Assembly: GCA_002269645.1 (NCBI GenBank)
Contig: NIVC01004489.1
Location: forward strand, 1 to 44,367
Source of the DNA: Macrostomum lignano
Lineage: Eukaryota
Reading direction: 5' to 3'
Length of the DNA stretch: 44,367 nt
Each line of letters starts with the position of its first letter. The first letter of the stretch is position 1. Positions 10,232 through 33,155 of this stretch are shown here, in pieces. A model generated the notes under the pieces. The model did not search any database. It was not told where the DNA came from and was given only the letters and a program-made list of their open reading frames with translations. A program made the translations under genes and the position numbers.

Positions 10232-10727
10232 AGAGCGTTTTTTGTAAAAAGATATAGTATTTTGCAAGCGCGCAATATTTCAAAGCGTGAAAAACGAACG
10301 AAAAATGAACAAAAACGAACTTCGAAAGAAATTTACGTTAAACGAATAGCGACGATTTAAATAGGTATTAGATAGGAAACTAATTAAATATTAATTAAAT
10401 GCTAATTAAATAGGAAATTAAAAAGACAGTAAATGAATAAACAAAAGAAAAGAAAAGCGGATTTATTACACTGCTGATATGTCTGTTTCAGTTTGCATAA
10501 CTGTTTTAGCTATTCATGACTTCATATATTTTAGCTACACCAGTGAGCTCTTTTCTGACTCTTTTCATTTGTAGCATATCCTAACTTGTGTACTTGCTTG
10601 TCATTTAAGAGGTACTGACAGAAGTTTTTTTTCTGATCTTTTCAGTTTGTGGACATTCGGTCAAGTAGTGTAGGATATCGGAACCATTTCTCGCTCCACA
10701 CAGTCTACATGCTTCATGAGAGAAAAT
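10232..10727 (-). repeat. 3' copy of the LINE terminal direct repeat (partner at 33353-33837)
   Basis: Near-identical to 33353-33837 across the last ORF2 codons and proximal 3' UTR; more diverged toward 10232. Confidence 0.92.
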
Positions 10728-11392
10728 GTTGGGTGTAATTTCGCATTTCAGTTTTAGGAGGGTTGTTAAGAATTTTTTGTTTCTAAAAGTGCATGGAAAG
10801 TAATCTGAAAGGTCGGGCCTGCAGATTTTTTTGTAGAGATAGGCGTTTTTGTAGAGTTTAATATGTTGCTGATTCTCTAGCTTTTGGCTAAGTTCTCTTT
10901 CTCTGTGTATCTTGAGGTGCTTTTTCACTAGGTATTTCTCGTTATTAAAGCTTTGGGAAAGTTTATCTTCAGTTAGTGCTTTAAAGTCTATACTTTCCAG
11001 TTTCTTTAGTACATTTGTTTTCCATGGATTTTTTTGGCTGGTGTTTGAGTAGAAAATTTCTAGAGTCGTTTGGCAGAGTTTTTTGTGTCTAATCTTCAGC
11101 CAGTAGATGAGGTAGGTTTTAGCGATTCGTTGAGAGATTGGAGTAAGCTCAAGTTCTGATGATATCACACTGTTGCTAGCAAATTTTGGTAGATTGAGGA
11201 GATATTTGTAGAACTTCAGCTGAATATTATCAATAGCTTTTGTATCAGACATGGTAGCCAGAGGGCCCCAGAGCTCACAACTGTAAGTGATAACGGGGGT
11301 AACAAGCGCGTCAAATAGTCTGCGAATGAGTGTGATGTCTAGGGACGTATTCTTTACCCTATGGAGTAGGGAAAACATGGCTGTATATCCCT
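10605..11392 (-). pseudogene. LINE ORF2 C-terminal part (post-RT region and zinc finger)
   Basis: LFDALVTPVITYSCELWG, IQLKFYKYLLNL, CRLCGARNGSDILHYLTEC; continues in frame from 29434 once the EnSpm insertion is removed. Confidence 0.88.
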
Positions 11393-12780
11393 GCCCCAGT
11401 GAAAAAAATGATATGGATTCCATGTGGATTTTTCATATGAAATCCATATGTGCATTTGTCTCCGTCCATCCATGTGGAATCAAGATATGGATTCCACATG
11501 GAAGATCCATATGGAAGTAATTATGTATTTCACATAGAATCCACATTGTCATTGAATAAGCAGCCATTATACTGGTTGCCATAATAAATTGTTGCATCCT
11601 AAATCTCAAAATAATACCAGATCTCAAAATTTCATACGAACCCCAGATCTCAATACCATATAAAAGAAACTGAAACAGATAAAACACTAGCTATAGCCAA
11701 AAATATTTCTGCACAAAAATTCAAAATTCAAAATTCAATATTCAAAAACGATGTAAGGTGTATTTATGTACAGTAGTGAGTCACTGGCACACAAAGAATA
11801 AACACACTGATGTAAATATTGATATCTTTAGAGTTGCACTGCGCATATGATATAATATATAATTTGAAATTGACATTGTCAATAGCATTAATTAACAATA
11901 ATATAATGCATCAGAATTAGAACAGTCAGAAACATGCTGCTGCCAATTGCCAGAATGCTGCTTCTTCAGGTCAGGTGAGCAACCTTAGAAAAGAAAGGGG
12001 TTAAATTACAGAATTTTATAACAGATTGATGACAGATTTTGTAATAGATTTTGATAGATTTTGATGACAGAAAAAAATAAGTTTATAACTAAAACTTACC
12101 ATTGCTTCACAAAAGGTAGCATTTGAGATATTAAATTCAAATTCCAAGTAGCTTTGCAAGCTTCTTCAAATGCAAGACCAAGGTGACATCCAAGTTTGAA
12201 GATGGGTCATGTAATGTTAGGCATGCATGAAATAGAAAAATAATTGTTGCCAATTAAGATTGATAAATAATATTGATATAATTCATAAAACTAATTTAAT
12301 GATGAATACTTATAAAATAAAATAAAGGTTATTTTAAAATTAACTAGGCCTAAGTCCTAGGTTTATTTTTTAAGCGCAAAGTGTGCATATGCACCCTAAA
12401 TTTAAAAATTGCACCTTGAAAATTGAAATTAAAAAGTTGATGATACAGTTTAGGTGTGATCTCATTACCTATTTTTCTGTTGAAGCCTTTTTTGCACTGC
12501 CTTTATATAAGAAAAAAGAGAAACTGCATTTTAAGCCTTAAAATCATAAAACCCTAAAAGTGAGCATAGGGTATGATTTTGCACCTTGTCTCTAGCAAAA
12601 AAGAAAACCCTACCCAAGTCAATCAATAAAATTAAATTAATAAAATTAAAATAATAAGTACAAAAAATTAATATGTTTCTATAAATTTAATTTTTTATTT
12701 TAAAATTGATTTTAGACTATAAAGTATTTAGGCAAAGCAATGCATGTTTTTTTTATATTTGCGGGCCTATTATGATTAAA

Positions 12781-13144
12781 AGGGGGGCTGTAGCCAAGCG
12801 GTAGCATAGCTGCTCTGGTGTGCCAGCGACCTAGGCTTGATTCTAAGTGCAGTCACATTAATTTGGGGCTGAATTGGAATCTTGGCTTGGCTCTCTGCTT
12901 GTGCAATTAATGGCCTTTAGAGGCAACCCCCAAGGCACAATGAAGTATACATGCCTAACAATAAATAAAGTTAGGGCCACTGTACACTCCTGTGTAAATG
13001 TGCCTGCATACGTATCCGCACGCTTGTGTGCCTGCTCAAGGGAGTTAATGGAATGGGCAGCAATGCCTCTCGCCAGTTGTATGCCTATGTCGCTTAACGT
13101 GTGCCAGGGTGCACACAACCCCCTGCCTCTAATAAAAAAAATAG
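12781..13144 (+). mobile_element. tRNA-derived SINE
   Basis: Head GGGGGGCTG, A box TAGCCAAGCGG (12791-12801), decayed B box GGCTTGATTCT (12834-12844), A-rich tail, 10-bp TSD TATGATTAAA (12771-80, 13145-54). Confidence 0.78.
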
Positions 13145-15288
13145 TATGATTAAACATTAGGCCTAATCTTAAAAGCTATGCCCTATAGCTATTAAATTCT
13201 AGACTTGGCCTAAATCAGATCAAATTTACAATAATCATTATTTATTTGTAATAGCAACCTTAGGGATCTGCTAGGCTAGCTATGCCAAAAACAGGTTGCA
13301 AGTGTAATTGCAAAGAATTATTTATAATGATTAATAATATTGTTTTTAAAAATGCAACAAGTCTAAAAGACGCTAACAGGCTTTTTTGAAGAAAATCATA
13401 AATGAATAGATTTTTAACAGATTAACTAGATTGACTAGTCACAATTCACAAAGTCAAGCTAGTCTTAACCTTAATTAAAATAGAAGGACCTAAATTGATA
13501 GTTATAGGCCTAGGCCTAGCTTAAAATAGGCCTAATAAGCATACATAAATAGATAAGACTAATAGGTAGGACTAAGAGGAAATTATGAACTTCTAAAGGA
13601 CTATTTAAGTTTAAAAAATGAGTAGCCAATCTATGGACATGGCCATGGGATTCCTAGAAATTGGATAAGCCTAAATAAATTTATCATGGATGGATTTTAC
13701 CAAAAGTATTAGGCCTATCTATGATGAAATACTGATTTATCTAATTTCTAATCCCATGGAGGCCATGGCCTTATAAGTTATTGCCTATAGGCTACGTCTA
13801 CTAAAATTTTTAAGGTGCTTAAATAGCCATAAACAAGGCAATTTATCTTTCAAGGCCTTGAACCAAGACATTGACGAATATAAAATAAAATAAATTTAAT
13901 TTTAAAAAGCACGAAACGTTTTTTATTGTTCACTTCTATTTTGTCTATTTTAACAAACAGTATCTTATTTTCTGATTATAATTTAGCTTTAAGATATTAA
14001 TTTTTACTTAAAAGCATATAAATATAATAATTAATTATAGTAATTTCATAAAAACGTCTGAATGTGGTGTATCACAGCACCCGTGTCAGCAGTTTATACG
14101 CGAATTCAGCACAATTTTAGGTACGATAAACATGCATATCCAGCATGCTGGTTGCCTTTACTGCATGCTGGATACTCGTACATATTGCCTGCACAATGAC
14201 AAACAAACTAGTACCGTCTAAATTCAATATTGTAGCCTAATCACAACTGAATAGTATTGCTTTCTATTCGTTAATAAAAAACGGGAGTTAAATACATTTC
14301 ACTGTACAGAGTTAGTTATTCCTAAAGCAACTTTCGATACATCATCAATTTTGAATATGCTTAATTTTGAGTACAAGTGCCAGCAGCAGGCTTGTTTGAG
14401 CTGACTGCGATCCCTAAAATACAGATATGGATATTAGATATGACTTAGGGGCCTAGCCTAGATAGATGGATCGTCAGAATATCATTAAAATAGATCATAT
14501 CATCATCGTTAGGCCTACTACCTGGTTCTGCCACACTGACTAGACTTAGACTAGACTAGAGTCTATAGACCTATTCTATTGGTATAGAAAAATTAAAATC
14601 AAACTTGATGGGGTTGGGAAGCACATTGATCATTAAATATAGGCCTACCAAATAAATCAAGTTTTAATGCATGGGGATAATAATAAGCTTTTAATATCAA
14701 AGCATTTTATTTTTAAAACCAAACAAAAAGTAAATGGTTAATTTCTAGCATAAAAAGTTCATTAGGCCAGGCCTACATTTATAAAATAAGAATGTTTTGA
14801 CTAAATTCTCATTTTTGTTATTTAAATTTTGTTTTTGCCCCTAAATTATTGTGGCCATAATCATGGATATTTTGTATCTTAACTTTTCTTTCCTGCAAAC
14901 ATTTATTTTATCAAAGGTTATATTATTATAATTATGATATATCTATATTTATATAGCATTAGGTAAGATTATGTTATTTAACCATTTTCATATTATAGTT
15001 CTAAAAAATTATAAAATTTAATGGTTACTTATAATATAAATCTATGTTTATATGCTAGTTTTGTTAATTAATATTTGTTGCCTTGGATTGGTAATTAACA
15101 TGGTTAAATAATCTATGACCAAATTGGCTTAGGGGTAAAATAGTCTATAGGTTAAATTGTTTTAAATGCGAAATTTCCATAGCTAACATAGCTTAAGGGA
15201 ATAATGACCAGTTATTTTTTAATAGGTTTGCTAATTTGCTTTGTTTTTTTACCCAAGAAACAAATTTTTTAGATGCAGAATTATATAC

Positions 15289-15990
15289 CCTCTATACCCT
15301 CCCTATATTCTCCCTGTACCTTCCATACCCTTCATATACCCATCTTTATCTCTCTACATCCTCCATACCCCTTCCCTATACCCTAATGCTCTCTATATAC
15401 CCTCTGTACACTCCATACCTTCCTATACTCTCTATACTCTCCCTATATCTCTCTATACCCTCCATACTCTCTATACTCTCCCTATACCCATTTATACCCT
15501 CCCTATATACCTTCTCTGTACCTCCATACCCTCGCTATACCCTCCATACCCTTCCTATACCCTCCATACCCTTCCTATACCTTCCATACCCTCCATACTT
15601 TTTCTATACCCACCCATGGCCTCCCTGTACCCTCTATGCCCTCCATATACCCTCAATACTCTCCCTATACCCTCCATACCCTTCTATACCCATTCATACC
15701 CTCCATATACCCTCCATACCATCCCTATACCCTCCATACCATTCCTATACCCTCCATACCATCCCTATACCCTCCGTACCATCCCTATACTCTCCTTATA
15801 ACCTCTCCATACCCTCCATACCCTCCATACTTTTTCTATACCCACCCATGGCCTCCCTGTACCCTCTATGCCCTCCATATACCCTCAATACTCTCCCTAT
15901 ACCCTCCATACCCTTCTATACCCATTCATACCCTCCATATACCCTCCATACCATCCCTATACCCTCCATGCCCTCCCTATACTCTCCATA
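15289..15990. repeat. Pyrimidine-rich 8-9-bp degenerate array (CCTCCATAC / CCCTATAC) with an internal ~230-bp duplication; mirrored at about 27280-27981
   Basis: Visible low-complexity array; the block TTTTCTATACCCACCCATGGCC occurs twice (about 15600 and 15832). Confidence 0.9.
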
Positions 15991-16171
15991 CAATCCTGCT
16001 TTTCCTATACTTCTCCTTCCCGCGTTATACTTTTCCCTATCCAGCCTCTACTATCCCCTCTTTCCACCTCCAGCGCCTCCCCCTCTCTAGCCCCTACCCT
16101 CTCTTCCTTTACTTTCCAGCCCCCATCCTCTACTCCCCTCCAGCGCCCACCCTCTTCTCCCATCAGCCCCC

Positions 16172-16990
16172 ACCCTCTCCTCCACTCCAGCGCCCTCCCT
16201 CTCCTCCACTCCAGCGCCCTCCCTCTCCTCCACTCCAGCGCCCTCTCTCTCCTCCACTCCAGCGCCCTCCCTCTCCTCCACTCCAGCGCTCTCTCTCTCC
16301 TCCACTCCAGCGCCCTCCCTCTCCTCCACTCCAGCGCCCTACCTCTCCTCCACTCCAGCGCCCTCCCTCTCCTCCACTCCAGCGCCCTCCCTCTCCTCCA
16401 CTCCAGCGCCCTCCCTCTCCTCCACTCCAGGGCCCTCCCTCTCCTCCACTTCAGCGCCCTCCCTCTCCTCCACTCCAGCGCCCTCCCTCTCCTCCACTCC
16501 ATCGCCCTCCCTCTCCTCCACTCCATCGCCCTCCCTCTCCTCCACTCCAGCGCCCTCCCTCTCCTCCACTCCAGCGCCCTACCTCTCCTCCACTCCAGCG
16601 CCCTCCCTCTCCTCCACTCCAGCGCCCTCCCTCTCCTCCACTCCAGGGCCCTCCCTCTCCTCCACTCCAGCGCCCTCCCTCTCCTCCACTCCAGCGCCCT
16701 CCCTCTCCTCCACTCCAGCGCCCTCCCTCTCCTCCACTCCAGCGCCCTCTCTCTCCTCCACTCCAGCGCCCTCCCTCTCCTCCACTCCAGCGCCCTCCCT
16801 CTCCTCCACTCCAGCGCCCTCCCTCTCCTCCACTCCAGCGCCCTCCCTCTCCTCCACTCCAGCGCCCTACCTCTCCTCCACTCCAGCGCCCTCCCTCTCC
16901 TCCACTCCAGCGCCCTCCCTCTCCTCCACTCCAGGGCCCTCCCTCTCCTCCACTCCAGGGCCCTCCCTCTCCTCCACTTCAGCGCCCACC
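16172..16990. repeat. 24-bp VNTR (CCCTCTCCTCCACTCCAGCGCCCT), 34 units
   Basis: Counted from the PPLQRPPS translation; 336 bp (14 units) longer than its mirror. Confidence 0.95.
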
Positions 16991-18080
16991 CTCTACTCTC
17001 CTTGGTTATGCCTTTGTTACGCTCTTCCCTCCTCTCTGTTTTACTTACTGTGTCATGCATAACCCGTCTGCTACAGTGTTTTTAAATAGCCTTTTATACC
17101 CTCCTCTTTCCCTAGCCCCTCCTCCCCCGGCGGCTCCCCTTCTCGTAGCTCTGCTAATAAAATCGTAATTCTTCTTCTCTTCAAAATAATTTGCCCAGCT
17201 GCGAACTGTGATGGTGCATACCGGGTACTCGCAATTTAAAAAGCGTATGCTTCTTACTGATTTAATTCCGACGCAACCAAGCAAATCGTTTACTTTCAAG
17301 TCCGTGCATTTTTCTTGTGTTTAACTTTTCACCGTTCGGCGTTAATGCCGTGTGGCGTTGGTGTAATACTATCGCGAAATTCAATTTCCAATGTCATTAT
17401 ATAACTATTGTCGCTTTTCTGTATTACAACTATATACTATACTTCTGCATTTATTGACGTAACATTGTGCCAATAATGTCACATTGTGTGGCCCCAATAT
17501 GAATCTGTTGCTGAATGCAACTTATAGCGCAATGACCATTTTAATCGCTTGAAATACATTGTAATGTAATACTGTATCGCTTTTGGCAATCGAAACGAGA
17601 CTTTAGCCAGACTCCTCACTGATCCAAATGCTCCTCAAGCAAAGGTACGAGTATATGGAAAGCAGACTGAGCTCCGCAGACTTAGTATATTTGATCTTCG
17701 GATCGCGGATAGAACCAAGGAAATCTTGATACGTAAATAAAATTGGAGTCACTTTTCCTACTTCCACTTCCCTGCTCTTTCCCTGACCACAGTCTGTGCC
17801 CCAGGCTTAAGTTAGACCAACGCAAAATACTAACCTGAATAGGAAGCAAGCAACTCACTTCCCACTCTAGTCTTTTTCTGCCACTGTTGTCTTGCAATAC
17901 TCGCAAAGATCTCGTATGGCGTCCTATTTGAATTGGCGCAAGTCTCGTTTACATAGTCGAAAGCAATACTGGTGCCAATTATTTGTGTCGATCAAGTTTC
18001 CTAGAGAATGATTTGTTGATAACTGTATATTCGCTGTCTTAGAGCTGCACGCTGTGTTTAACCATTACTTTGTCGTAGAG

Positions 18081-18736
18081 GAGCTGATGAAGGGAGGCGT
18101 TGGGGCGGACCTTTTGGAGGGGCGGAGCTGATGGGGGCGGTAGCGGTGGAGCTTTTGGAGGGGCGGAGCTGATGGGGGCGGTAGGGGCGGAGCTGATGGG
18201 GGGGCGGTAGGGGCGGAGCTGATGGGGGGCGGTAGGGGTGGAGCTGATGGGGGGCGGTAGGGGCGGAGCTGATGGGGGCGGTAGGGGTGGAGCTGATGGG
18301 GGGCGGTAGGGGCGGAGCTGATGGGGCGGTAGGGGCGGAGCTGATGGGGGCGGTAGGGGCGGAGCTGTTGGAGGGGGCGGTAGGGGCGGAGCTGATGGGG
18401 GCGGTAGGGGCGGAGCTGATGGGGGCGGTAGGGGTGGAGCTGATTGGGGGCGGTAGGGGTGGAGCTGATGGGGGGCGGTAGGGGCGGAGCTGATGGGGGC
18501 GGTAGGGGCGGAGCTGATGGGGGGCGGTAGGGGCGGAGCTGATGGGGGCGGTAGGGGTGGAGCTGATGGGGGGCGGTAGGGGCGGAGCTGATGGGGGGCG
18601 GTAGGGGCGGAGCTGATGGGGGCGGTAGGGGCGGAGCTGATTGGGGCGGTAGGGGCGGAGCTGATGGGGGGCGGTAGGGGCGGAGCTGATGGGGGGCGGT
18701 AGGGGCGGAGCTGAGGGGGGCGGTAGGGGCGGAGCC
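18081..18736 (+). repeat. G-rich 22-23-bp array (GGGGGCGGTAGGGGCGGAGCTGAT); C-rich mirror at about 24868-25522
   Basis: Directly visible; each unit has G4-5 tracts and two GGGGCGG GC-box motifs. Confidence 0.95.
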
Positions 18737-18934
18737 CTACGTGTACGTGTATTCGAGCTACGCTGGTAGTGCAGTTGTTTGTCTAGTATAGTTTATACAT
18801 GCGTATACTGTATGTACATGTAGTCTCACAATCCCAGCAAAAGCTAGACATTTTATTTCTTTGGTTAGTAATCGTGGGGATATTAGATCCACATGCAGCT
18901 ATATCGTCATTCGGTCAAGTTATGAACCCGCAGT

Positions 18935-19527
18935 CCCGCTCGATCCAGTTGCACAGATTCTCAATTGGATTGCCAGTCCATGGTGCGGATGTTGTTCTCA
19001 GCAAGCTTCGGATCGTTGTCCTGCTGAAACTGGCAGCACATACCGGCGACCATCAGAACCAGTGCGGGAAAATTTGCTCTCATCACTTCAGATGACCTTG
19101 GCCCCAGTCCTGGGGTGTAGAGCTTGCATGTTGCTTCGCCCAGTTCAAGCGCCGCTTCCGGTTTTTGTCGGAGATGAATGGCTTCTTCCTAGCAATGCGG
19201 CCATGCAGTCCGGCAGCTACCAGACGGCGGCGGACAGTCATGGGGTGCAGCTGGACACCTGAAGTTCACGGCTGATGTCCACAGCGGTTAGCCGACGGTT
19301 GGACTCGGGCATTCGCACAATTCGTCGATCCAGTCGGTGGTCAGTTTTCGGTGCCCGCCAGGTCTTGAGGCACAGCCTGTGCTGCCAGTGCTGCTGAGGC
19401 GCCTGAATGCTTGCTGCTGGACGCACGTTTTCTGCGTACGTGACTTTGGCACGCTGGGAAACTCCTTGGTCGAACAGGGCCCTGATTTTCCTACACGATT
19501 CAGGCGATAGAGCTTTGCCTTTCCCAT
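18935..19527 (-). pseudogene. Internally deleted Tc1-type transposase remnant
   Basis: Across frames: MGKAK, PKTDHRLDRRIVR, LTAVDI, TVRRRLVAAGLHGRIARKKPFIS, R.NWAK.H, KVI*SDESKF, FQQDNDPK, PIENL. Confidence 0.85.
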
Positions 19528-22189
19528 TCTAGGAGAGTTCGAGATCATTTTTGCTTGGGTTGTATTGAATTTGATGTTTTGGACTTGGACTTGGATGTTT
19601 TGGACTTTGGAATCAGCAGGGCCACTGTTGTAGCACCTTTTAGCCCAATTAATTAAGTGGTCTCATTACTGTGTGACTTATCAAATTCGATTGTGAGATA
19701 AGGACTTCAATTAAACAGACTCAATTGTGAGTAATTACACAACACATAACTATAATTTTACTGATTGATACCACGGTTATCTATAACTGATTAGATTAAA
19801 TGCTTCCGCAATCTGTGAAGGTTATGAAACTAAAAGTTCGAATTTGTGTTAGGTGGTCTTAATTCATTGTGCGCCACTTTATGTATAAGTATAATGTTGC
19901 TGAGTACTTTCAAGGCTCAATCCAATTACATGTACCATGTCGGAGTGGCCGTCTAAATATGGCTAAAACACACTAAAAATAAAGCCTGAGAATTTGCATT
20001 TACATTGAGATAAGTAGTAGACCTTGGAACTGGTTAACAGGCCTCAAAACGAGGCAATTGTGTTTTAAATTGAAACTAAACTGATACTGAAATTGAGCAT
20101 GAAAAAGACGTACGCTCAAAATCATTCAAAAACGACGTTAATTTGCTCTCACCGTTAATGGAGAGCCGAAACTGATACAGTGGCGTTAATTTCAATTCCT
20201 GACTACTGGCGGCAGCCCCATCATTTTCTCTATAATGCAGCTGCTATCTCACGGGAGCTGCAAACACAGCTTTTAAATTGGGCTGAGTAGCTGATTGGGC
20301 CGCCTTAATTGTTTCCACGGCGCCTCCGGTGTGCAGGGAATACATGTAGCTGGTCATTCGGGCATGGATCCTTGTCCAGATGTATGAGGGGCACTACGAA
20401 AGTTCTGAGCCATTCGATGGCATTGGATACATGTACGAGCCCAGTGTCCATGATGTCAGCATTATGCCGTAATTATGCTGACGCGTCAGCATATTTTTGA
20501 CAAGCAAAAAAATTCCAAATTTGTGTTGCATTGATATCTGTTTGATATTTATTGAAAGTGCTTTCAGTTTCGCCAGCAATTCTTTCTTTTTTAGGCGCAG
20601 CATCAAACTGGAATAAATTTGGCCTGTGCATGCCACGGCACAATTAAGACATTAAGTGCTAAAAATATGACTTTGAGAAATTTAGAAGGAAAAGATTTTA
20701 TGCAGGTTCCTGAATAGTCCCAAATTGATAATAGTCTTCAAAGATACCCATTGACAAATTTTACTGTCTTCATAATTTTCGCATATATACAGCATGCAAA
20801 TGCTTGTTCATTTCGTCGATTTGATATAATTTGAATTGTACATGTTTCTTATATATACTGAATGGACTACAAATAGTTGTCATACAAGTAATATTTAGAT
20901 GGTTTATTTTAAGCTATGTTATCTTTTGGCTATAGTAGTTATACATGTTTTTATTTTTTGTTATAATACTAAATATTGAACAATATTGAACAAAAATATA
21001 GCACATTTTTAATTGATGCTTTACGAGTCTTAGGCCTAGTCTGTCTCGATCAATTGTACTGGCTTTTATATGTATGCGCAGAAAAATACCTTTTCTAACA
21101 AGGCATTTGTATATTAGTTTCTAGCAATAGTAGTGGGTGCAGTCTGACAATTTTCTAAGGCTGTATATGATATTACGAAGTTATATATGTTAATGTACTA
21201 GCCTAGGCTCTATAGGCATAGGCCTATGTGAAATATTGTACTTGTCATATTTTATATACACCAGTCTTTAGTTGCTTTGTTGTATAAATTGCTGTTAAAA
21301 TATGATATGATATAATACTGTTCCTTGTATTTTATATTGCAAATAGCAAACAATTACATTTTCAGTTGTCAAAAAAGGATAAAACTAATTTTAAGTTTTA
21401 TCTAAATCAATGAAACAAATGTTGAAATCAGACAATAGGCTTTTTCTAGTTTCTTAACTATTTTATTTACTGGGACACTTAAGCCTTTAAGAGGTCTACT
21501 TATAGTAAAGTACTTATCTATAAATTCTATAAACAAAAAATTTAAATTGAATATCAATTATTTAGCAATATTAAAAATGTGATAAATATATTTTTTCCAT
21601 CATAGTTTAAGACTTTATTATGGCTTTTTAAATTCTAATTTTTTATTTTTTATATTGTAATGTTCATGATATTTTCATGATTAAATGTCTAAATATGATA
21701 TATTGATACAATATTAAATATAGCAAAAGCAGTTAATATGCAGTGTATTATGTTAATGTGTAGTTTAATATTTTTATATATTGCAAGTATAGCATGTTAT
21801 TAAAGAGGGACATTATTTTCATGGTATATATTGACAAAGATCAATCAATTTTATTAGTTTACTATGTGGATAAGACTAGGACTAGGAGCAGCATTATCTA
21901 CATAATTCTATGCCAATTGGGAAGATATTCTATAGTATATAATATTAAATATTAAGTATTGAGTAGTATTAAGTATTTTCTTCCTTAATAGTCAGTTTAT
22001 CTAAGATTCTAAGAGAAGGAAAGACAGGGATTGGAAAAGAATGATAGATATATATTAGACAACTATATAAGTGGTAGAAAGGAGAGGAGAAGACTATGGG
22101 AATTGAAAAAAGAAAAGTTTGTAAGTGGGAGTTAAAAGCCAAATAAACATGTTATCTCAAGTCCAATTTATGCATTATTTCTTATTTCA

Positions 22190-22720
22190 GATGAGCATTC
22201 AATTTGAACAATGCAAATTCAAAGTCACATGCTTCGAAGCTGGGATGCAATTACTGTCAAGGTTGAAGAAGTTTCGCTGAAGATAGGGTGGTTTACAAAA
22301 CTTTTGTAGGCATTAAAAGAACAGATGCGGACTACAAATCTGGTCTTGAGAATAACCAACTGCAGATTTCGCCACTCATTGACAATGCAAACTTGCAGTC
22401 TGGTTTCCCTGTTGATTACTAACATTCTGTTTGTTTGGGAGTTGTTCGCCAATTGTTAAAGTTTTTTCTCCACTGTAAAGTGTTTTCGTCTTCGTTGTAA
22501 ATTATACCCAACTGCTTTGGCTAAGCTGTCTGAAAAGTCGATTTCTTTGGCGAAATTTATACCAAATGAGTTTCAGTGACGGCCAAGGCAATTTGATACC
22601 AAGCTTTCTCATTTTAAGGCAACAGAATTCAGACTCTTTGCTGTATTTGGGACCCTATCTTTTAAAGAAGTATCTGCTTATAACTTTTGTATGTTGTTTT
22701 TGTTGCTATATTCTGTTTAT
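22190..22720 (+). pseudogene. CMC/EnSpm-type transposase fragment
   Basis: RAF...KSH..KLGCNYC, RVVY...RTDADY, SPLID, FPVDY*HSVCLGVVRQLL, IPNEFQ*RPR, FKATEFRLF, LYLGPYLLKKYL; stops and frameshifts. Confidence 0.85.
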
Positions 22721-22989
22721 ATTTTTATGTTGTTATGTTTCTGTTTTCCCATGCTATTTAAGTTACTATTTAAGTTAAATTATAAAAGAATTAAAGAACT
22801 AAAAACATGTTCCTACCATTGTTTTCAATGTTAAAAAAATACTTTTCTGCGCCGTCTTTTTTACAATACACTTTTATTTAGTTCTTTTGTACCATTTCCT
22901 AAAGCCTAATTAAAGCCTTGTGGAGTTCAAAAAGGGTTAAGTGCTTCATTGTAATAATTGGACAACAATTGCATTATTTATAAGCCACA

Positions 22990-23340
22990 GAAAGCTACGA
23001 CGTACATTGGTTTACTATATAATTGAACAGGCATATCAGTCGCATATAGTCGGCATAAAAGCAGCATTACACTGGCATTTCATGCTAACATAATGCCTGG
23101 ATCCTGTCGCGACATTCAGTCTGGCATGATATGCCAGCATTATTTCAACAATGCAGCCACAATGCTACGAAGTACATTGGTTAACTACATAATTGAACAG
23201 GCATATCAGTCGCATATAGTCGGCATAAAAGCAGCATTATACTGGCACTTCATGCTAACATAATGCCTGGATCTCGTCGCGACATTCAGTCTGGCATGAT
23301 GCTGGCATAATATTCCGGCATTATTCCGACAATGCGGACA
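22990..23340 (+). repeat. ~175-bp tandem duplication in the right subterminal region of the inner EnSpm
   Basis: GCTACGA.GTACATTGG...GACATTCAGTCTGGCATGAT occurs twice in tandem. Confidence 0.9.
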
Positions 23341-24005
23341 CTGGGAGTGTCCCTTGACGTGTGCGACAATCGCCCCTGGCCGCAAAAACTGTACATGTAT
23401 GTAAAAACATACTCAGCAACAGTCAAAAGTTCCACCCTCCAAGCGAGATGAACTTTTCACTTATTGCGATCATCGCTATCTGTCGACGTGTTAACACATT
23501 TAGTGCCAAACGTGTGCAGTTACGTGCACTTGTACATGTACTTCTGGAAATTTGGTAATGAAGTAGTACATTTAGCAGTGTATGAAGGCTCGCCAGCGCA
23601 AGAACCCCCTGCAAAAGTCCTCTCTGTCCCTGCATGGCCAATGCGATCTTAGTCCCAGCAGCGTCCCTTCTATTCGACTATGACTTCGAGATAGACAGCT
23701 AAAAGACACTAGATGGCAGGTAAGTGCAATGCCCCTCTAGTCGGAAGTCCGATTTCGATAGCTCTGGTTTGGTGAGCCGGGGCGCACGGACTGGTGGTAG
23801 CGGGTTAGTTAATCCGCGGGTTAGCTAATCTCTACCTTTCAAATTCTCCCTGCATTGTCTCTCGCTGTCTTCCCTTAGCTATAGGACCTTGCTGCTCGCC
23901 ACACAATCCAGCTACCACGGGGCTGACCATCTGACAGGAGTGAGAAGCCAGAGTTCTAAGTGATTCATTTCTGAGTTCTGAGGCCCAGAGCTACAGGCTT
24001 AAAAA

Positions 24006-24149
24006 GGCCGAACCCATCAGAATGTTGCGGAGCTGCGTCATGCCATTGAAAACGCTTGGCAGCAACTTCCCCAGGACTTTCTGCGCCGCCTCATCCTGGG
24101 GATGCCCCGCAAAGTCGCCGCACTTCAGCATGCGAGGGATCGTTCTTAA
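24006..24149 (+). pseudogene. Tc1 transposase C-terminal fragment
   Basis: QNVAELRHAIENAWQQLPQDFLRRLILGMPRKVAALQHAR fits the Tc1 C-terminal pattern N..EL...I...W..IP......LI.SMPRR..AV..A.G. Confidence 0.75.
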
Positions 24150-24636
24150 GCATTTGTGATTCTAACTGCATATTGCAAAAAAATAATTGTGTTGATTTTG
24201 CTCGACTGACGTTTATATTGATTCACTCGCGGCGACTTATTTGCGTAACTCGAGGGTTGAATTGTGAGTGAGAAGTCCTCCCTCCCTCAAACTCCTCCCC
24301 CCCACAAGTCCGCCTCTACCGGCCTCCCCCTCCGTAAGTTCCGTCCCTATAAGCTTCGACTGTCTCTGCACTGTCTCTCAATCTTGCGAGTGACGCAACT
24401 TATAGCATTACGCCACAAGACGACTTGGGTTGAGGAATGAAGTGGGGGAAGGGGATCGCGGTGTGCGAGAGTTGGACGGATTAAAGCTACGCCTCAGTTT
24501 TCTCGTATCTTTTATTTCAAATTAGTCCAAGCTAGAAGCTAGCTCACTGGCGCATAGAGTGGCGACTTTTTTCAATGTTGCTTTGTCAGTGGGGATTCTC
24601 AACTTGACTGACAAGATACGAGTATTTTGTATGACT

Positions 24637-27600
24637 GGGTTCAAAACTTGACTGAATGACGATATAGCTGCATGTGGATCTAATATCCCCACGATTACTA
24701 ACCAAAGAAATAAAATGTCTAGCTTTTGCTGGGATTGTGAGACTACATGTACATACAGTATACGCATGTATAAACTATACTAGACAAACAACTGCACTAC
24801 CAGCGTAGCTCGAATACACGCACACGTTGTGTATACTTCAATCGGTCGAATAAATAGAAAAACCATCAACTCCGCCCCTTCGACCCCCCTCCATCAGCTC
24901 CGCCCCTACCGCCCCCCTCCAACAGCTCCGCCCCTACCGTCCCCCCATCAGCTCCGCCCCCTCCAAGAGGTCCGCCCTTACCACCGCCCCTACCGCCCCC
25001 ATCAGCTCCGCCCCTACCGCCCCCATCAGCTCCGCCCCTACCGCCCCCCATCAGCTCCACCCCTACCGCCCCCATCAGCTCCGCCCCTACCGCCCCCAAT
25101 CAGCTCCGCCCCTACCGCCCCCCATCAGCTCCGCCCCCATCAGCTCCGCCCCTACCGCCCCCCATCAGCTCCGCCGCTACCGCCCCCCATCAGCTCCACC
25201 CCTACCGCCCCCATCAGCTCCGCCCCTACCGCCCCCATCAGCTCCGCCCCTACCGCCCCCCATCAGCTCCGCCCCTACCGCCCCCATCAGCTCCGCCCCT
25301 ACCGCCCCCCATCAGCTCCACCCCTACCGCCCCCATCAGCTCCGCCCCTACCGCCCCCATCAGCTCCACCCCTACCGCCCCCATCAGCTCCGCCCCTACC
25401 GCCCCCCCATCAGCTCCGCCCCTACCGCCCCCATCAGCTCCGCCCCTCCAAAAGCTCCACCGCTACCGCCCCCATCAGCTCCGCCCTTCCAAAAGGTCCG
25501 CCCCAACGCCTCCCTTCATCAGCTCCTCTACGACAAAGTAATGGTTAAACACAGCGTGCAGCTCTAAGACAGCGAATATACAGTTATCAACAAATCATTC
25601 TCTAGGAAACTTGATCGACACAAATAATTGGCACCAGTATTGCTTTCGACTATGTAAACGAGACTTGCGCCAATTCAAATAGGACGCCATACGAGATCTT
25701 TGCGAGTATTGCAAGACAACAGTGGCAGAAAAAGACTAGAGTGGGAAGTGAGTTGCTTGCTTCCTATTCAGGTTAGTATTTTGCGTTGGTCTAACTTAAG
25801 CCTGGGGCACAGACTGTGGTCAGGGAAAGAGCAGGGAAGTGGAAGTAGGAAAAGTGACTCCAATTTTATTTACGTATCAAGATTTCCTTGGTTCTATCCG
25901 CGATCCGAAGATCAAATATACTAAGTCTGCGGAGCTCAGTCTGCTTTCCATATACTCGTACCTTTGCTTGAGGAGCATTTGGATCAGTGAGGAGTCTGGC
26001 TAAAGTCTCGTTTCGATTGCCAAAAGCGATACAGTATTACATTACAATGTATTTCAAGCGATTAAAATGGTCATTGCGCTATAAGTTGCATTCAGCAACA
26101 GATTCATATTGGGGCCACACAATGTGACATTATTGGCACAATGTTACGTCAATAAATGCAGAAGTATAGTATATAGTTGTAATACAGAAAAGCGACAATA
26201 GTTATATAATGACATTGGAAATTGAATTTCGCGATAGTATTACACCAACGCCACACGGCATTAACGCCGAACGGTGAAAAGTTAAACACAAGAAAAATGC
26301 ACGGACTTGAAAGTAAACGATTTGCTTGGTTGCGTCGGAATTAAATCAGTAAGAAGCATACGCTTTTTAAATTGCGAGTACCCGGTATGCACCATCACAG
26401 TTCGCAGCTGGGCAAATTATTCTGAAGAGAAGAAGAATTACGATTTTATTAGCAGAGCTACGAGAAGGGGAGCCGCCGGGGGAGGAGGGGCTAGGGAAAG
26501 AGGAGGGTATAAAAGGCTATTTAAAAACACTGTAGCAGACGGGTTATGCATGACACAGTAAGTAAAACAGAGAGGAGGGAAGAGCGTAACAAAGGCATAA
26601 CCAAGGAGAGTAGAGGGTGGGCGCTGAAGTGGAGGAGAGGGAGGGCCCTGGAGTGGAGGAAAGGGAGGGCGCTGGAGTGGAGGAGAGGGAGGGCGCTGGA
26701 GTGGAGGAGAGGGAGGGCGATGGAGTGGAGGAGAGGGAGGGCGCTGGAGTGGAGGAGAGGGAGGGCGATGGAGTGGAGGAGAGGGAGGGCGCTGGAGTGG
26801 AGGAGAGGGAGGGCGATGGAGTGGAGGAGAGGGAGGGCCCTGGAGTGGAGGAGAGGGAGGGCGCTGGAGTGGAGGAGAGGGAGGGCGCTGGAGTGGAGGA
26901 GAGGGAGGGCGCTGGAGTGGAGGAGAGGGAGGGCCCTGGAGTGGAGGAGAGGGAGGGCGCTGGAGTGGAGGAGAGAGAGAGCGCTGGAGTGGAGGAGAGG
27001 GAGGGCGCTGGAGTGGAGGAGAGAGAGGGCGCTGGAGTGGAGGAGAGGGAGGGCGCTGGAGTGGAGGAGAGGGAGGGCGCTGGAGTGGAGGAGAGGGTGG
27101 GGGCTGATGGGAGAAGAGGGTGGGCGCTGGAGGGGAGTAGAGGATGGGGGCTGGAAAGTAAAGGAAGAGAGGGTAGGGGCTAGAGAGGGGGAGGCGCTGG
27201 AGGTGGAAAGAGGGGATAGTAGAGGCTGGATAGGGAAAAGTATAACGCGGGAAGGAGAAGTATAGGAAAAGCAGGATTGTATGGAGAGTATAGGGAGGGC
27301 ATGGAGGGTATAGGGATGGTATGGAGGGTATATGGAGGGTATGAATGGGTATAGAAGGGTATGGAGGGTATAGGGAGAGTATTGAGGGTATATGGAGGGC
27401 ATAGAGGGTACAGGGAGGCCATGGGTGGGTATAGAAAAAGTATGGAGGGTATGGAGGGTATGGAGAGGTTATAAGGAGAGTATAGGGATGGTACGGAGGG
27501 TATAGGGATGGTATGGAGGGTATAGGAATGGTATGGAGGGTATAGGGATGGTATGGAGGGTATATGGAGGGTATGAATGGGTATAGAAGGGTATGGAGGG

Positions 27601-29192
27601 TATAGGGAGAGTATTGAGGGTATATGGAGGGCATAGAGGGTACAGGGAGGCCATGGGTGGGTATAGAAAAAGTATGGAGGGTATGGAAGGTATAGGAAGG
27701 GTATGGAGGGTATAGGAAGGGTATGGAGGGTATAGCGAGGGTATGGAGGTACAGAGAAGGTATATAGGGAGGGTATAAATGGGTATAGGGAGAGTATAGA
27801 GAGTATGGAGGGTATAGAGAGATATAGGGAGAGTATAGAGAGTATAGGAAGGTATGGAGTGTACAGAGGGTATATAGAGAGCATTAGGGTATAGGGAAGG
27901 GGTATGGAGGATGTAGAGAGATAAAGATGGGTATATGAAGGGTATGGAAGGTACAGGGAGAATATAGGGAGGGTATAGAGGGTATATAATTCTGCATCTA
28001 AAAAATTTGTTTCTTGGGTAAAAAAACAAAGCAAATTAGCAAACCTATTAAAAAATAACTGGTCATTATTCCCTTAAGCTATGTTAGCTATGGAAATTTC
28101 GCATTTAAAACAATTTAACCTATAGACTATTTTACCCCTAAGCCAATTTGGTCATAGATTATTTAACCATGTTAATTACCAATCCAAGGCAACAAATATT
28201 AATTAACAAAACTAGCATATAAACATAGATTTATATTATAAGTAACCATTAAATTTTATAATTTTTTAGAACTATAATATGAAAATGGTTAAATAACATA
28301 ATCTTACCTAATGCTATATAAATATAGATATATCATAATTATAATAATATAACCTTTGATAAAATAAATGTTTGCAGGAAAGAAAAGTTAAGATACAAAA
28401 TATCCATGATTATGGCCACAATAATTTAGGGGCAAAAACAAAATTTAAATAACAAAAATGAGAATTTAGTCAAAACATTCTTATTTTATAAATGTAGGCC
28501 TGGCCTAATGAACTTTTTATGCTAGAAATTAACCATTTACTTTTTGTTTGGTTTTAAAAATAAAATGCTTTGATATTAAAAGCTTATTATTATCCCCATG
28601 CATTAAAACTTGATTTATTTGGTAGGCCTATATTTAATGATCAATGTGCTTCCCAACCCCATCAAGTTTGATTTTAATTTTTCTATACCAATAGAATAGG
28701 TCTATAGACTCTAGTCTAGTCTAAGTCTAGTCAGTGTGGCAGAACCAGGTAGTAGGCCTAACGATGATGATATGATCTATTTTAATGATATTCTGACGAT
28801 CCATCTATCTAGGCTAGGCCCCTAAGTCATATCTAATATCCATATCTGTATTTTAGGGATCGCAGTCAGCTCAAACAAGCCTGCTGCTGGCACTTGTACT
28901 CAAAATTAAGCATATTCAAAATTGATGATGTATCGAAAGTTGCTTTAGGAATAACTAACTCTGTACAGTGAAATGTATTTAACTCCCGTTTTTTATTAAC
29001 GAATAGAAAGCAATACTATTCAGTTGTGATTAGGCTACAATATTGAATTTAGACGGTACTAGTTTGTTTGTCATTGTGCAGGCAATATGTACGAGTATCC
29101 AGCATGCAGTAAAGGCAACCAGCATGCAGGATATGCATGTTTATCGTACCTAAAATTGTGCTGAATTCGCGTATAAACTGCTGACACGGGTG
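24637..29192 (-). repeat. Right inverted arm of the foldback (4556 bp)
   Basis: Reverse complement of 14078-18929; shorter mainly through fewer 24-bp units. Confidence 0.95.
26616..27098. repeat. Mirror of the 24-bp VNTR, 20 units
   Basis: Counted from the translation of ORF 26438-27634. Confidence 0.95.
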
Positions 29193-29433
29193 ATCACAGT
29201 TTTTTTATCGAAGTGGATTCCATGTTGAATCAATATACGCTTATTTCTCATGAATTCCTTGTAAAATCCACATCAACATTAGGACAGTAAAAATTAAAAA
29301 ATAGTGCATAAAAAATACTTTGCATACCATTATGTCATCTTTAAGTCATTAATTTGCAAAAATTAAAGAAACATTTAAATTCCACATGGCCACGTGGAAC
29401 CCACGTGGAATCCATGAATCATTTTTCACTGGG

Positions 29434-31422
29434 GCTTAGTTTGGTGTTTAATACATTTTTTAAAGCTGTTTTTTGGTTCAAAAATAATTCCCAGGTATTT
29501 AAATTCATTTACTTCCTCTATTTCTTGGTTGTCGTAGTATATTTTTGTAGCAATGCTTTCTGCGTCGTTTTTTTGTCTGGTATTGCCCTGCATGAACTTT
29601 GTTTTGCTTGCGTTTACTTTCAAGTAATTTTGTTTGCAGTAATTTTCCATAGTCGTAAATGTGTCTTGAAGTTCGTCTTTGTTTTTAGCTAGAATGGCTT
29701 GATCGTCTGCAAAGAGTAGGATGAGTGGGAAAGCAGATCTCGTAAGAGAGCGCCTAGCGCTAGAGAGTTCAAGATATTCAACAATGTCGTCAATATATAG
29801 TTCAAAAAGGATGGTAGAGAGAGGGTTGCCTTGAAGAACACCTTTTGATATTGGGATTGGCTGGGTTTCATCATCATCATCTTCATTTTTTAGAATGAAG
29901 CAGGCATTTTTATGCATGTTCTTGATAAGTTCCGTCTTTTGACCTTTAATACCCTGGTTATCCGTTTTGTGCCAAAGGGTCGGTTGATTTAAGCTATCGA
30001 AGGCTTTTTCATAGTCAACAAATCCAATAAAGAGTTCTTCTTTGTTGTAGATGGATTGGTTTATAATGTTGTAAAGATTAAAACATTGGTCGATTGTGCT
30101 GTGATTGGGCTTGAAACCGTATTGGTATTTTGATATAAGATTGTTTGCGTATGCTAGGTTTTCGAGTCTGGATTTAATAATTTGGCAAAAGAGCTTGCCA
30201 AGAATTGGTTGAATGCAGATTCCTCTGTAATTGTTGGGGTCGGCACTGCTGCCTTTGTTTTTATAAATCGGATGAAGTGTATTTGTTATCCAACTAGTTG
30301 GGAAGGTTCCTTGTTTGAGTGCTTCGTTGAAAAGTGAGCATAGGAGGTCAGCAAGTTCGTTCTCGAGGTATTTGAGTGTTTCTACATATACTTTATCGTG
30401 CCCAGGTGCTTTGTCGGTTTTGAGCTTTTTAAAATGTTTTATAACTTCTTCTTTGGTGAATGGGGCATTGAAATCCTCTAAATCAGCCAGAATAGGGTTG
30501 TCAAGGTGAAGATTGTATGAAAGTCTAATGCTGCTGTCTTGTTCAGTTACAAGATTTTGAAAGTGTATGATAAATTTTTCATCAATTGTTACTCTGTTGT
30601 TTGAGGGATTTGGTGTTTTTAATAAGTTCCAAAGTTGTTTTGTATCGTTTTGAATAAAGGCCTGGTTGATCATGTTGTCTGCACAGAGAGTTGTTTCAAA
30701 TTTCCATGAAGTGAGCTTTTTTTCGTATGCTTTTTTGAGTTGTACTTTGCTTGAGAGGTTGTTGGGAGTAGGGAAGGTTTTATATCTTCTGCAGGCATGT
30801 CTAGCAGCGTTTCTTAAATCTTTAAGGAAACGAGGCAGTGTTGAGCATAGTGGGTTCTTTATCTCTACTGTGATGTTGTTTTGAATTTGTCTAACTTTTC
30901 TACTTAATTCATTTATAAAAGCTGGGTTTTGTATGTCTAGATTTGTGATTTTGTCATGCATGTTTTTCAGGTCATTTGCGAAGTTATTGATATGTTTTTC
31001 TTGTTGCAGGTTGGGTTTATGTGACTTTTTTAGGACTCTGTATCTCGTTTTCGAGTTATTGGTTGCTTGTTTAGTTTCTGTGATTTCCTCTGTGAATTCA
31101 CTTGATAGGGAGAGCACTATTTGGTTGTGGTCGCTAAAGTAGGTGTGGTTCTTTACTTTAAAGTCTTCGAGGTGTTGGAGTAAGCTGGTAGAGACGAAAC
31201 AGAGATCTATAACAGAGGAACCAGATTTTGAGAGAAAGGTGAATTCACCATTTGTGTCTGATAGTGATCTACCAATTGATTAGATGCAGGTTGTATGAGT
31301 CAGCAATCTGGTTAAGTAGTCTACCATTTTTGCAGGTTTTCTTGTCTTGGCTTTGTCTAGTAAGTGAGATGTTTTTTGCTCTGGTGGTATATATTGAATT
31401 TAAATCTATGTACGAGGTATTG
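29434..31422 (-). pseudogene. LINE ORF2: C-terminal half of the AP endonuclease plus reverse transcriptase
   Basis: NGRLLN, SVIDLCFVS, SDHNQIVL, then KAPGHD, NYRGICI, QYGFKPNHST, FVDYEKAFD, GVLQGNPLS.ILF, LLFADD, EFKYLG; two small indels near 31300 and 31225. Confidence 0.93.
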
Positions 31423-32473: not shown

Positions 32474-33155
32474 TATATATGAGCATTGAAGTCGATCCAA
32501 TAAGGAAGATGTTTTCTTCGGAGTGATAAGCATCCAGGAGAATTGTTAACTGTTCCCAATTTTCTTCTTCATAATATTTTGAAGACAGTGGGGGTATATG
32601 GGCGTTTATTAAGGTAAAGCTTTTGTTTTTATCCTTTTTGTGTTTAAAATTTAGTGTCAAGAAGTTTTTATAATGTTTGAATGATTCTGTAACATTGTAT
32701 TGTGTATCTAGTGACTTTTTGTAAGCTGTTAATAATCCACCAGAAGCTCTGCCAATGAATTTACAGCCTTTTTTGTTTGCAGGCTTTTGGTATGTCATGT
32801 AGTTTTCAGACAGGTTGTTGATTTTGAGTCGCTTGTTTTCATTTTTTGTGTCTATTATCCAAGTTTCTTGAAGGCAGAGAATATTATTCTTAAAAATTGA
32901 TTCAGTTTCCAGTAGTTCAAGTTTGGGAATCATCACAGAGTCTTTTATTGTGTAAAGTCCATTGATATTCCAGCTGCTAATAGTAAATTTTTCTTTATCA
33001 ATTTTTTGGATAATATTAAATTCAAGGAGTTTTGATTTGATATTGTAAGGAATTTTTTTGATCTTTTGAGCATTGTTATTTCTAATAGAAATGAGGTACT
33101 TTCTAGTGTATTTTGTATTAAGTAAGGTATTTGAAAGGGCGTCAAGAATTTTTTT
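32474..33155 (-). pseudogene. LINE ORF2: N-terminal part of the AP endonuclease
   Basis: ISSWNINGL, ILCLQETW, GRASGG, LINAHIPP, FLIG.DFNAH (1-bp slip near 32495). Frame is open from a TAA at about 33160. Confidence 0.9.

Follow-up and report, generated by a model that had tools for sequence, protein, structure and literature searches.

A 15-kb locus with the anatomy of a non-autonomous foldback transposon, 4.6-4.9-kb inverted arms and a 7-bp target-site duplication

Listed foldback transposons include Drosophila Foldback (FB), sea urchin elements, Chironomus TFB1, and plant FARE/Tnr8 (PMC4079207). Most described foldbacks are Mutator-like, with target-site duplications (TSDs) of 8-10 bp, and for two of them, Tetris and Tm1, the Mutator superfamily was assigned by the length of the duplication, no copy with a transposase having turned up (PMC4079207, PMC3169594). 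Galileo, of the P superfamily, has as its target a palindromic GTANTAC motif (PMC4168063), and elements of the Dada superfamily make 6-7-bp duplications, have no terminal inverted repeats (TIRs), and insert in small-RNA genes (PMC3706591). Here we compare with these systems a locus in a 44,367-bp window (the whole stretch of DNA that was analysed) in which two long inverted arms enclose a core.

Layout and integration of the element

The element and its immediate borders comprise the following features:

14078-29192, foldback element, 15,115 bp in total, inverted arms around a core
14078..18929, + strand, left arm (TIR), 4,852 bp, terminus CACCCGTGTCAGCAGTTTATACGCG; inverted match to 24637-29192, with unique parts 99.9% identical
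24637..29192, - strand, right arm (TIR), 4,556 bp
18930..24636, no strand, core, 5,707 bp
14071..14077, no strand, left TSD copy ATCACAG, exact direct repeat of 29193-29199
29193..29199, no strand, right TSD copy ATCACAG, exact direct repeat of 14071-14077

The arms account for 9.4 of the 15.1 kb and thus are the long TIRs of the foldback class, and the ATCACAG on each side is the TSD of that class. Both arms stop at identical bases, flush with the 7-bp direct repeat: on the + strand, the left junction reads ...GGTGT ATCACAG/CACCCGTG... and the right junction reads ...CACGGGTG/ATCACAG TTTTT... (slashes mark the ends of the element). Because the base outside ATCACAG breaks both the inverted and the direct repeat, the boundaries of the element are unambiguous; the original prediction, which had placed two near-identical inverted arms at 14078-29192, ending at ATCACAG, had these coordinates correct. 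The terminal 22-mer CACCCGTGTCAGCAGTTTATAC occurs in the window only at the two outer ends, in inverted orientation, with 0 occurrences expected by chance. There is no second copy of the element within the window.

Alternatively, the arms could have formed in situ as an inverted segmental duplication (a palindrome), through fold-back priming or template switching and without transposition, in which case the 7-bp repeat would be either coincidental or a microhomology at the junction. In favour of this, inverted duplications induced by breaks are well documented (PMC10622511), the left arm has at its inner boundary a rearrangement junction with a possible GACT(G) microhomology, and a second copy that would prove mobility was not found. 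However, a direct repeat outside inverted arms indicates integration, since an inverted copy made in situ would carry its flank inverted and cannot yield a direct repeat outside both arms. In addition, the arms end at identical bases flush with the repeat, for which the chance of a 7/7 flank match is 1.3e-4 (calculated from local base composition, for one insertion), and a unique terminus followed by graded tandem arrays is the typical layout of a foldback transposon. We consider an origin in place very unlikely.

The sequences that surround the foldback are themselves mobile elements:

11394..29434, no strand, outer TIR element hosting the foldback; non-coding; 2.9 kb without the foldback
10605..11390, - strand, 3' part of non-LTR retrotransposon ORF2; RVT_1; continues at 29435-31276, - strand

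The outer element has TIRs of ~35 bp (CCCCAGTGAAAAA..ATGGATTCCAYGTGG) and subterminal GGATTCCAYRTGG motifs, is flanked by CTG/CTT, and gives no Pfam match. It splits the non-LTR ORF2 (the reverse transcriptase of which is 37% identical to its best relatives), and deletion of 11394-29434 together with one CTG yields an uninterrupted 876-aa ORF. Since removal of the outer element restores this reading frame, the insertions are nested and young. The foldback's two flanks are different sequences, both of which continue the one outer element. Farther out, at 2.9-10.2 kb and 32.9-40.6 kb, the Pfam scan covered ORFs of at least 150 aa and three shorter ORFs (75-99 aa).

These flanks bear on a composite origin, in which two opposite insertions of a 4.7-kb element bracketed 5.7 kb of pre-existing DNA that later did or did not move with them as a unit. 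The core is ordinary transposon debris and could be pre-existing local DNA, as a composite would have it, but the flanks derive from one 2.9-kb outer element that the core does not resemble. Independent insertions, moreover, would each have a duplication of their own, not one shared outermost 7-bp repeat, and neither arm has a terminus at its inner end: the 22-mer of the termini is restricted to the outer ends even when up to 3 mismatches are allowed. A composite is thus highly improbable in our assessment.

We conclude that 14078-29192 is probably a single copy of a class II (cut-and-paste) transposon of foldback type, which is non-autonomous and was moved in trans. Directly observed are perfect TIRs, the exact 7-bp direct repeat, the absence of a transposase, and nesting in two other young mobile elements; the earlier designation as a non-autonomous foldback element agrees with this anatomy, which is that of a foldback-type DNA transposon. 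In the mechanism that we propose, a transposase encoded elsewhere in the genome would recognise the outer termini, which are identical (CACCCGTGTCAGCAG...), and might recognise subterminal sites too; it would excise the element and insert it at a 7-nt staggered break; and repair of the break would give rise to the ATCACAG duplication.

Divergence of the arms and rearrangement of the core

Each arm is made up of unique parts and tandem arrays (arrays delimited with Tandem Repeats Finder), given here for the left arm, from the terminus inward:

14078..15283, + strand, terminal unique AT-rich part, 1,206 bp; 1 mismatch to the other arm, at 14142
14137-14174, small subterminal hairpin (TATCCAGCATGCTGG...GCATGCTGGATA), 60-97 bp in from the terminus; contains the mismatch at 14142
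15284..15996, + strand, 20-bp tandem array (TACCCTCCATACCCTCCCTA) with a 232-bp higher-order unit; mirror at 27274-27986
16115..16998, + strand, 24-bp tandem array (TCCAGCGCCCTCCCTCTCCTCCAC), 36.9 copies; mirror at 26608-27155, 22.9 copies
16999..18103, + strand, middle unique part, 1,105 bp; 1 mismatch, at 17184
18104..18735, + strand, 25-bp G-rich tandem array (AGGGGCGGAGCTGATGGGGGGCGGT) with 74/221-bp higher order; mirror at 24863-25504
18736..18929, + strand, inner unique end, 194 bp; not Tc1-derived, with no tblastn match to Tc1 transposases

The arms therefore have the repeat organisation of the foldback class: in each arm, a unique terminus of 1.2 kb is followed by arrays of 20-, 24-, and 25-bp units. 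Outside the two unstable tandem arrays, the arms differ at 2 positions in 3,142 bp. The 20-mer array has 0 mismatches between arms over 713 bp, and the inner end has 3 mismatches in the 190 bp compared (18740-18929). With the 24-mer array, the left arm is longer by 312 + 24 bp, corresponding to 14 units, and there are also 7 substitutions; with the 25-mer array, left and right arms differ by many small indels and substitutions. The claim that the arms differ in VNTR copy number is thus confirmed by the 24-mer array (36.9 vs. 22.9 copies). We conclude that the tandem arrays of the arms gained or lost units independently, after or before the last jump. That the arms are nearly identical could be due to gene conversion instead of recency.

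Differences of this kind also bear on whether one arm is a spurious reverse-complement copy, the artefact of a fold in the assembly or in long reads. Assemblers are prone to error both at long inverted repeats and at G-rich tandem arrays. Read-level foldbacks, however, put the two strands within ~200 bp of each other (PMC12870357), whereas here a unique stretch of 5.7 kb keeps the arms apart; a difference of 14 repeat units, many indels, and point changes distinguish one arm from the other; and the flanks differ, continue one outer element, and carry a precise direct repeat. The original prediction had argued against an assembly fold, and the direct flank repeat, different flanks, unique core, and unequal repeat copy number all uphold that argument; we give an artefact very little credence.

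No motif common to the terminus and the tandem arrays, as a candidate transposase-binding site, was found besides the subterminal hairpin; no relatives of one arm ORF were found; the terminal 25-mer and a dimer of the 24-mer array were not found in metagenome contigs; and the sole match to the terminal sequence in the literature was a chance, primer-like one. Exact-match searches with three ORFs of the window also returned no hit.

In six-frame Pfam scans of the core and the unique arm parts, the sole match in the element was HTH_Tnp_Tc3_2 (PF01498, E = 1e-14), with no match in the terminal and middle unique arm parts and no transposase within the element. The core is non-coding except for pieces of a Tc1 pseudogene; it also contains an AT-rich stretch at ~20.6-22.9 kb and a repeat (170 bp x 1.8) at 22994-23300. 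The suggestion that the core carries cargo does not stand in the sense of genes, since its content is transposon debris, namely the split Tc1 pseudogene. Three features describe it:

18930..19416, - strand, Tc1-like transposase pseudogene, N-terminal part, residues ~40-289; PF01498, E = 1e-14
24003..24149, + strand, Tc1-like pseudogene, C-terminal part, residues ~290-343: KGRTHQNVAELRHAIENAWQQLPQDFLRRLILGMPRKVAAL...; E = 8e-5 and 1.7e-4
18930..24002, no strand, putative inverted segment; one breakpoint at the left arm/core junction, the other within Tc1

The N-terminal piece, which lacks ~70 aa internally and is broken by stops and frameshifts, ends ...NPIENLCNWIERDC, exactly on the arm boundary. 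The two halves are in opposite orientation, with the break at ~codon 289/290, and when 18930 (- strand) is joined to 24003 (+ strand), the reading frame is kept and the product can be aligned with four full-length Tc1 transposases with no gap (probes were database Tc1 transposases; Sleeping Beauty was too distant). Because one Tc1 pseudogene is split into halves of opposite orientation, we infer that 18930-24002 was inverted. This 5.1-kb piece of the core would have turned around after or before the last jump, and one of its breaks coincides exactly with the junction of left arm and core, which is where a hairpin or cruciform of the paired arms would be expected to break at its base. The proposal that the element could drive rearrangements thereby gains indirect support, from a core inversion with one breakpoint at an arm junction.

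Two other readings of the Tc1 sequences were considered. Two separate Tc1 copies are disfavoured, since the pieces meet at one and the same codon and can be put together in frame with no gap. A Tc1 3' end as the source of the innermost 190 bp of each arm, which would have meant extension of the arms by recruitment of Tc1, was rejected: that stretch gives no tblastn match, and the actual C-terminus of Tc1 is at 24003-24149. Searches for low-identity homology of the two sides beyond the arms, and for a displaced copy of the 24003-24636 segment in the core, gave no signal above shuffled controls.

Superfamily affinity and comparison with known systems

The length of the duplication fits P/Galileo-like enzymes best, and Mutator or hAT enzymes less well, although even a P/Galileo-like enzyme is less likely than not. 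The 8-10-bp (typically 9-bp) TSD of Mutator-type foldbacks is not what is found here, where the TSD is 7 bp. Dada membership was rejected: the element has 4.6-4.9-kb TIRs, and searches for Rfam and tRNA matches, as a test of a Dada-like target or small-RNA cargo, found none anywhere in the window.

According to the hypothesis that the element is a Galileo-like member of the P superfamily, it would be a non-autonomous two-arm derivative, mobilised by a THAP-domain P-type transposase, with TIRs about four-fold beyond those of any described Galileo. The 7-bp TSD is the same as that of Galileo, which is 7 bp and rarely 8 (PMC4168063); long TIRs with internal tandem repeats that are unequal at the two ends are found in Galileo; and the longest Galileo arms are likewise in non-coding two-arm copies (PMC3573991, PMC3688188). 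Against the hypothesis, the six-frame Pfam scans of the core and unique arm parts found no THAP or P-type transposase domain, and neither ATCACAG nor its 15-bp context GTGTATCACAGTTTT contains GTANTAC or a palindromic target motif (PMC4168063), although the context, with 1/7 palindromic pairs, is a single site and weak evidence against a Galileo target preference. Moreover, Galileo is known from Drosophilidae only, with TIRs of at most ~1.26 kb (PMC3573991, PMC10990002), and the host here is not close to Drosophila: a spinster-like gene in the window is only ~51% identical to the Drosophila protein, so the host is not drosophilid, and the best relatives of the spinster-like exon, 54-58% identical, are spread across animal phyla. 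The original prediction had called the element Galileo/P-like, a claim for which TSD length was the sole basis and which is weakened by the target sequence, the missing transposase, and the host. On balance we hold a Galileo-like origin to be possible but doubtful. The stronger proposal, that a Galileo-like branch of the P superfamily is still active in a non-dipteran animal, with TIRs ~4x longer than any described for the superfamily, and moves a 15-kb unit, is less likely again; if true, P-type transposons would show the foldback habit outside Drosophila too, and with arms beyond the kilobase scale.

Under our preferred reading as a foldback transposon moved in trans, the element is unusual in its size, but its kind has long been known, and it does not represent a new type of system. 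The locus gives a clean and well-resolved view of a very large foldback transposon shortly after it inserted, and it records the kind of instability to which such elements give rise: the arms have diverged in repeat number, and an inversion has one break at the position at which a hairpin or cruciform would be cut. In the genome of the host, the locus is a probable hotspot of rearrangement and a region that is hard to assemble. Were other copies and the transposase to be found, they could show how a cut-and-paste enzyme tolerates multi-kilobase arms, and whether 7-bp-duplicating (P-like) foldbacks exist outside flies.

Large genomic palindromes and inverted duplications formed by fold-back priming resemble the locus in that a spacer lies between inverted arms of kilobase scale and near-identical sequence, that there is a breakpoint where arm and spacer meet, and that gene conversion may maintain arm identity; unlike it, they have no defined identical termini and no direct TSD outside the arms. 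With FB and the other listed foldbacks the element shares long TIRs that consist mostly of tandem short repeats behind a unique terminus, a non-coding sequence, arm length that varies by gain and loss of repeats, and flanking TSDs; it differs from FB in its 7-bp duplication and its other animal host, and the likeness is structural, with no sequence relationship implied. The FB duplications are 9 bp, as Potter is said to have reported in 1982.

Tetris, from D. virilis, and Tm1, from root-knot nematodes, are likewise non-autonomous foldbacks with tandem repeats in their arms, but their duplications are longer (8-10 bp for Tetris, 9 bp for Tm1; PMC4079207, PMC3169594) and both elements are much smaller (~1 kb for Tm1). 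Galileo differs in a maximum arm length of ~1.26 kb, in contrast to 4.6-4.9 kb here, and the present element differs from Galileo in a duplication off GTANTAC, in having no transposase remnant and no THAP domain, and in a host outside Drosophilidae. Galileo termini are conserved over ~40 bp. The two are alike in the 7-bp duplication, in having the longest arms in non-coding two-arm copies, and in a history of structural rearrangement, Galileo itself being a cause of inversions (PMC3573991, PMC4168063, PMC2775673).

Boundaries and arms of the foldback element

The 15,115-bp foldback element (14078-29192) consists of inverted arms, at 14078-18929 and 24637-29192, that flank a 5,707-bp core (repeat finder and self-BLAST). 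The terminal 22-mer CACCCGTGTCAGCAGTTTATAC has two exact copies in the window, where chance predicts none, and these copies, inverted relative to each other, form the outer ends of the element. On the + strand, the left junction reads ...GGTGT ATCACAG/CACCCGTG... and the right junction reads ...CACGGGTG/ATCACAG TTTTT... (slash, element end). The ATCACAG direct repeat (14071-14077 and 29193-29199) is exact (7/7; chance of match 1.3e-4 with local base composition) and is not shiftable, because adjacent bases interrupt the inverted and direct repeats alike. The coordinates, arm and core sizes, and duplication of the original prediction were all reproduced by repeat finder, self-BLAST, and reading of the junctions. 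An inverted duplication formed in place via fold-back priming accounts for neither the direct repeat nor the identical termini, and would have left the flanking bases inverted, whereas the flank repeat is direct. Two independent insertions bracketing the core are opposed by the lack of inner termini in the arms (22-mer scan of the window) and by the single duplication common to both outer ends.

Arm segments, from outermost to innermost, and differences between arms
Part 1 (outermost): unique, AT-rich, 1.2 kb; 1,206 bp compared, 1 mismatch
Part 2: 20-bp array, 232-bp higher-order unit; 713 bp compared, 0 differences
Part 3: 24-bp array; 36.9 (left) and 22.9 (right) copies, a difference of 14 units, and 7 substitutions
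Part 4: unique, 1.1 kb; 1,105 bp compared, 1 mismatch
Part 5: 25-bp array, G-rich; many small indels
Part 6 (innermost): unique, about 190 bp; 190 bp compared, 3 mismatches

Arm-to-arm divergence is strongly uneven along these segments, and the tandem arrays change independently in the left and right arms; the earlier remark that the arms differ in VNTR copy number holds for the 24-mer array, which has 36.9 copies in the left arm and 22.9 in the right. In an assembly or read foldback artefact, both strands would lie within about 200 bp (PMC12870357), whereas here a 5.7-kb core intervenes; nor would such an artefact yield unique flanks or a difference of 14 repeat units between arms. Taken together, in-place formation, artefact, and two insertions are improbable. 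A small hairpin lies 60-97 bp in from each terminus; no motif common to the terminus and the tandem arrays was found, and a protein search with an arm ORF found no relatives. Within the 44-kb window, G-quadruplex motifs of the canonical type (four G3+ runs) occur almost solely in the foldback arms, on the - strand at 15-17 kb and on the + strand at 26-28 kb; they always occupy the strand that, read outward-to-inward, is the G-rich one in the 20-/24-mer arrays.

We conclude that 14078-29192 is structured like a non-autonomous foldback-type cut-and-paste transposon, because it combines identical inverted termini, a flush direct duplication, no coding capacity, and tandem-array arms. In this single copy, every feature of the structural foldback class that could be tested is present, and the structural interpretation first proposed is correct. 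A transposase supplied from elsewhere in the genome would bind the foldback termini, excise the element, and integrate it at a 7-nt staggered cut.

A split Tc1 pseudogene in the core

The core (18930-24636) and unique arm parts were scanned with Pfam in six frames, which gave one match, the HTH of a Tc1-type transposase; THAP, P-type, MULE, and hAT domains were all absent. Alignment with full-length Tc1 transposases from a representative library located two remnants.

Tc1 remnants in the core
19416-18930, - strand: N-terminal piece, residues about 40-289
24003-24149, + strand: C-terminal piece, residues about 290-343

The N-terminal piece, which has an internal deletion and stop codons, terminates ...NPIENLCNWIERDC, flush against the left arm's inner boundary, and the C-terminal piece lies 487 bp from the right arm. 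Rejoined, with the - strand to 18930 followed by the + strand from 24003, the two pieces are in frame, and the junction is gap-free in alignment to four Tc1 transposases. Therefore they are one pseudogene, split at about codon 289/290, and 18930-24002 now lies inverted with respect to the remaining sequence. This inversion has one breakpoint within Tc1 and the other exactly at the left arm/core junction, where GACT(G) is a possible microhomology. Past the arms, no homology was found between the left and right sides of the core, nor was there a displaced copy of the stretch adjoining the right arm. The break at the arm/core junction may be a trace of hairpin or cruciform breakage. The proposal that the element carries cargo is not upheld: because core matches are limited to the split Tc1 pseudogene, the core is transposon debris, without genes.

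Nested insertions and surrounding DNA

The foldback lies within an outer terminal-inverted-repeat element (11394-29434), which in turn splits a non-LTR retrotransposon ORF2 on the - strand that is interrupted at 29435 and picks up again at 11390.

Outer-element termini
11394-11427: terminal inverted repeat
29401-29434: terminal inverted repeat

The ~35-bp terminal inverted repeats, CCCCAGTGAAAAA..ATGGATTCCAYGTGG, lie exactly at the ORF2 break, with flanks CTG / CTT and subterminal GGATTCCAYRTGG repeats; without the foldback, the outer element is 2.9 kb, and no coding capacity was found in it. Deletion of the outer element plus one CTG regains an uninterrupted 876-aa non-LTR ORF. The order of insertion is non-LTR element first, outer element second, and foldback last, and, since the non-LTR frame is still open, all three insertions are young, regardless of arm identity. 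The outer element's 3-bp duplication suggests a superfamily other than that of the foldback. A direct repeat (10235-10727 / 33354-33837, 84% identical) marks where two members of one non-LTR family have their 3' ends; the second copy lies immediately upstream of the interrupted one and carries, at 33492-33598, two perfect copies of a 53-bp unit. Inside the non-LTR element, between its endonuclease ORF (32424-32936) and the point where its long RT ORF starts (about 31276), lies a 44-bp tandem repeat of 6.8 copies (31746-32045, 97% matches).

The window is animal genome DNA rich in mobile elements, with spinster-like MFS exons, mariner and Tc1 remnants, Ty3/gypsy pol, and non-LTR retrotransposons; in a 5.8-billion-protein collection, the spinster-like exon and RT have only distant relatives. 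No exact match to three ORFs of the window was found, and neither the terminal 25-mer nor a dimer of the 24-mer array occurred in the metagenome contigs scanned.

Spinster-like MFS gene exons
97-747, - strand: exon
2032-2871, - strand: exon

Between these exons lies a 1.2-kb array of 21-bp units, ATCTACCTGAAGATTTCAATA (853-2085; about 45-58 copies; 42/63-bp higher order), presumably an intronic minisatellite of the spinster-like gene. A mariner-like transposase remnant (7616-8350, + strand; …VTGDESLFHY…, DNARPHT…) contains stop codons and is not related to the Tc1 remnant in the foldback. Ty3/gypsy-type pol (40618-44229, - strand) encodes protease, RT, RNase H, and integrase, with out-of-frame overlap of the RT/RNase H and protease ORFs, and its G+C content of 58-66% contrasts strikingly with about 30-40% across most of the window. 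A series of short ORFs (38945-40321, - strand) repeats a cysteine-rich module, e.g. GPCKKGFRENIIYRYERNKDGSCVRKERRVSLAC and GPCHRGFRTNIIYQYTRDLEGRCARAEKSVTEEC, with no significant Pfam match; these ORFs could be host gene exons or a domain of the adjoining retroelement.

Comparison with known foldback families

Foldback elements have been known since 1980 in flies, sea urchin, midges, nematodes, and plants (PMC4079207), and most are assigned to Mutator, with 8-10-bp duplications, e.g. Tetris and Tm1 (PMC4079207, PMC3169594). Dada elements have 6-7-bp duplications, no terminal inverted repeats, and small-RNA gene targets (PMC3706591); the latter two properties rule out Dada membership. Galileo is the P-superfamily exception among foldbacks, with 7-bp duplications, terminal inverted repeats of 0.3-1.26 kb, tandem-repeat numbers unequal between ends, and the longest arms in non-coding copies (PMC3573991, PMC4168063, PMC3688188). 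The element described here resembles Galileo in duplication length and arm dynamics, but differs from it in arms about four times longer and in a non-drosophilid host. Of the features that define the P superfamily, it has the 7-bp duplication and lacks two others: ATCACAG does not fit the Galileo target motif GTANTAC, and the element holds no P-type transposase remnant. The Galileo/P label of the original prediction is unsupported, and the element may or may not belong to the P superfamily; a P-type partner, if found, would make the foldback more notable. We conclude that the locus is a large, young member of an already known kind.
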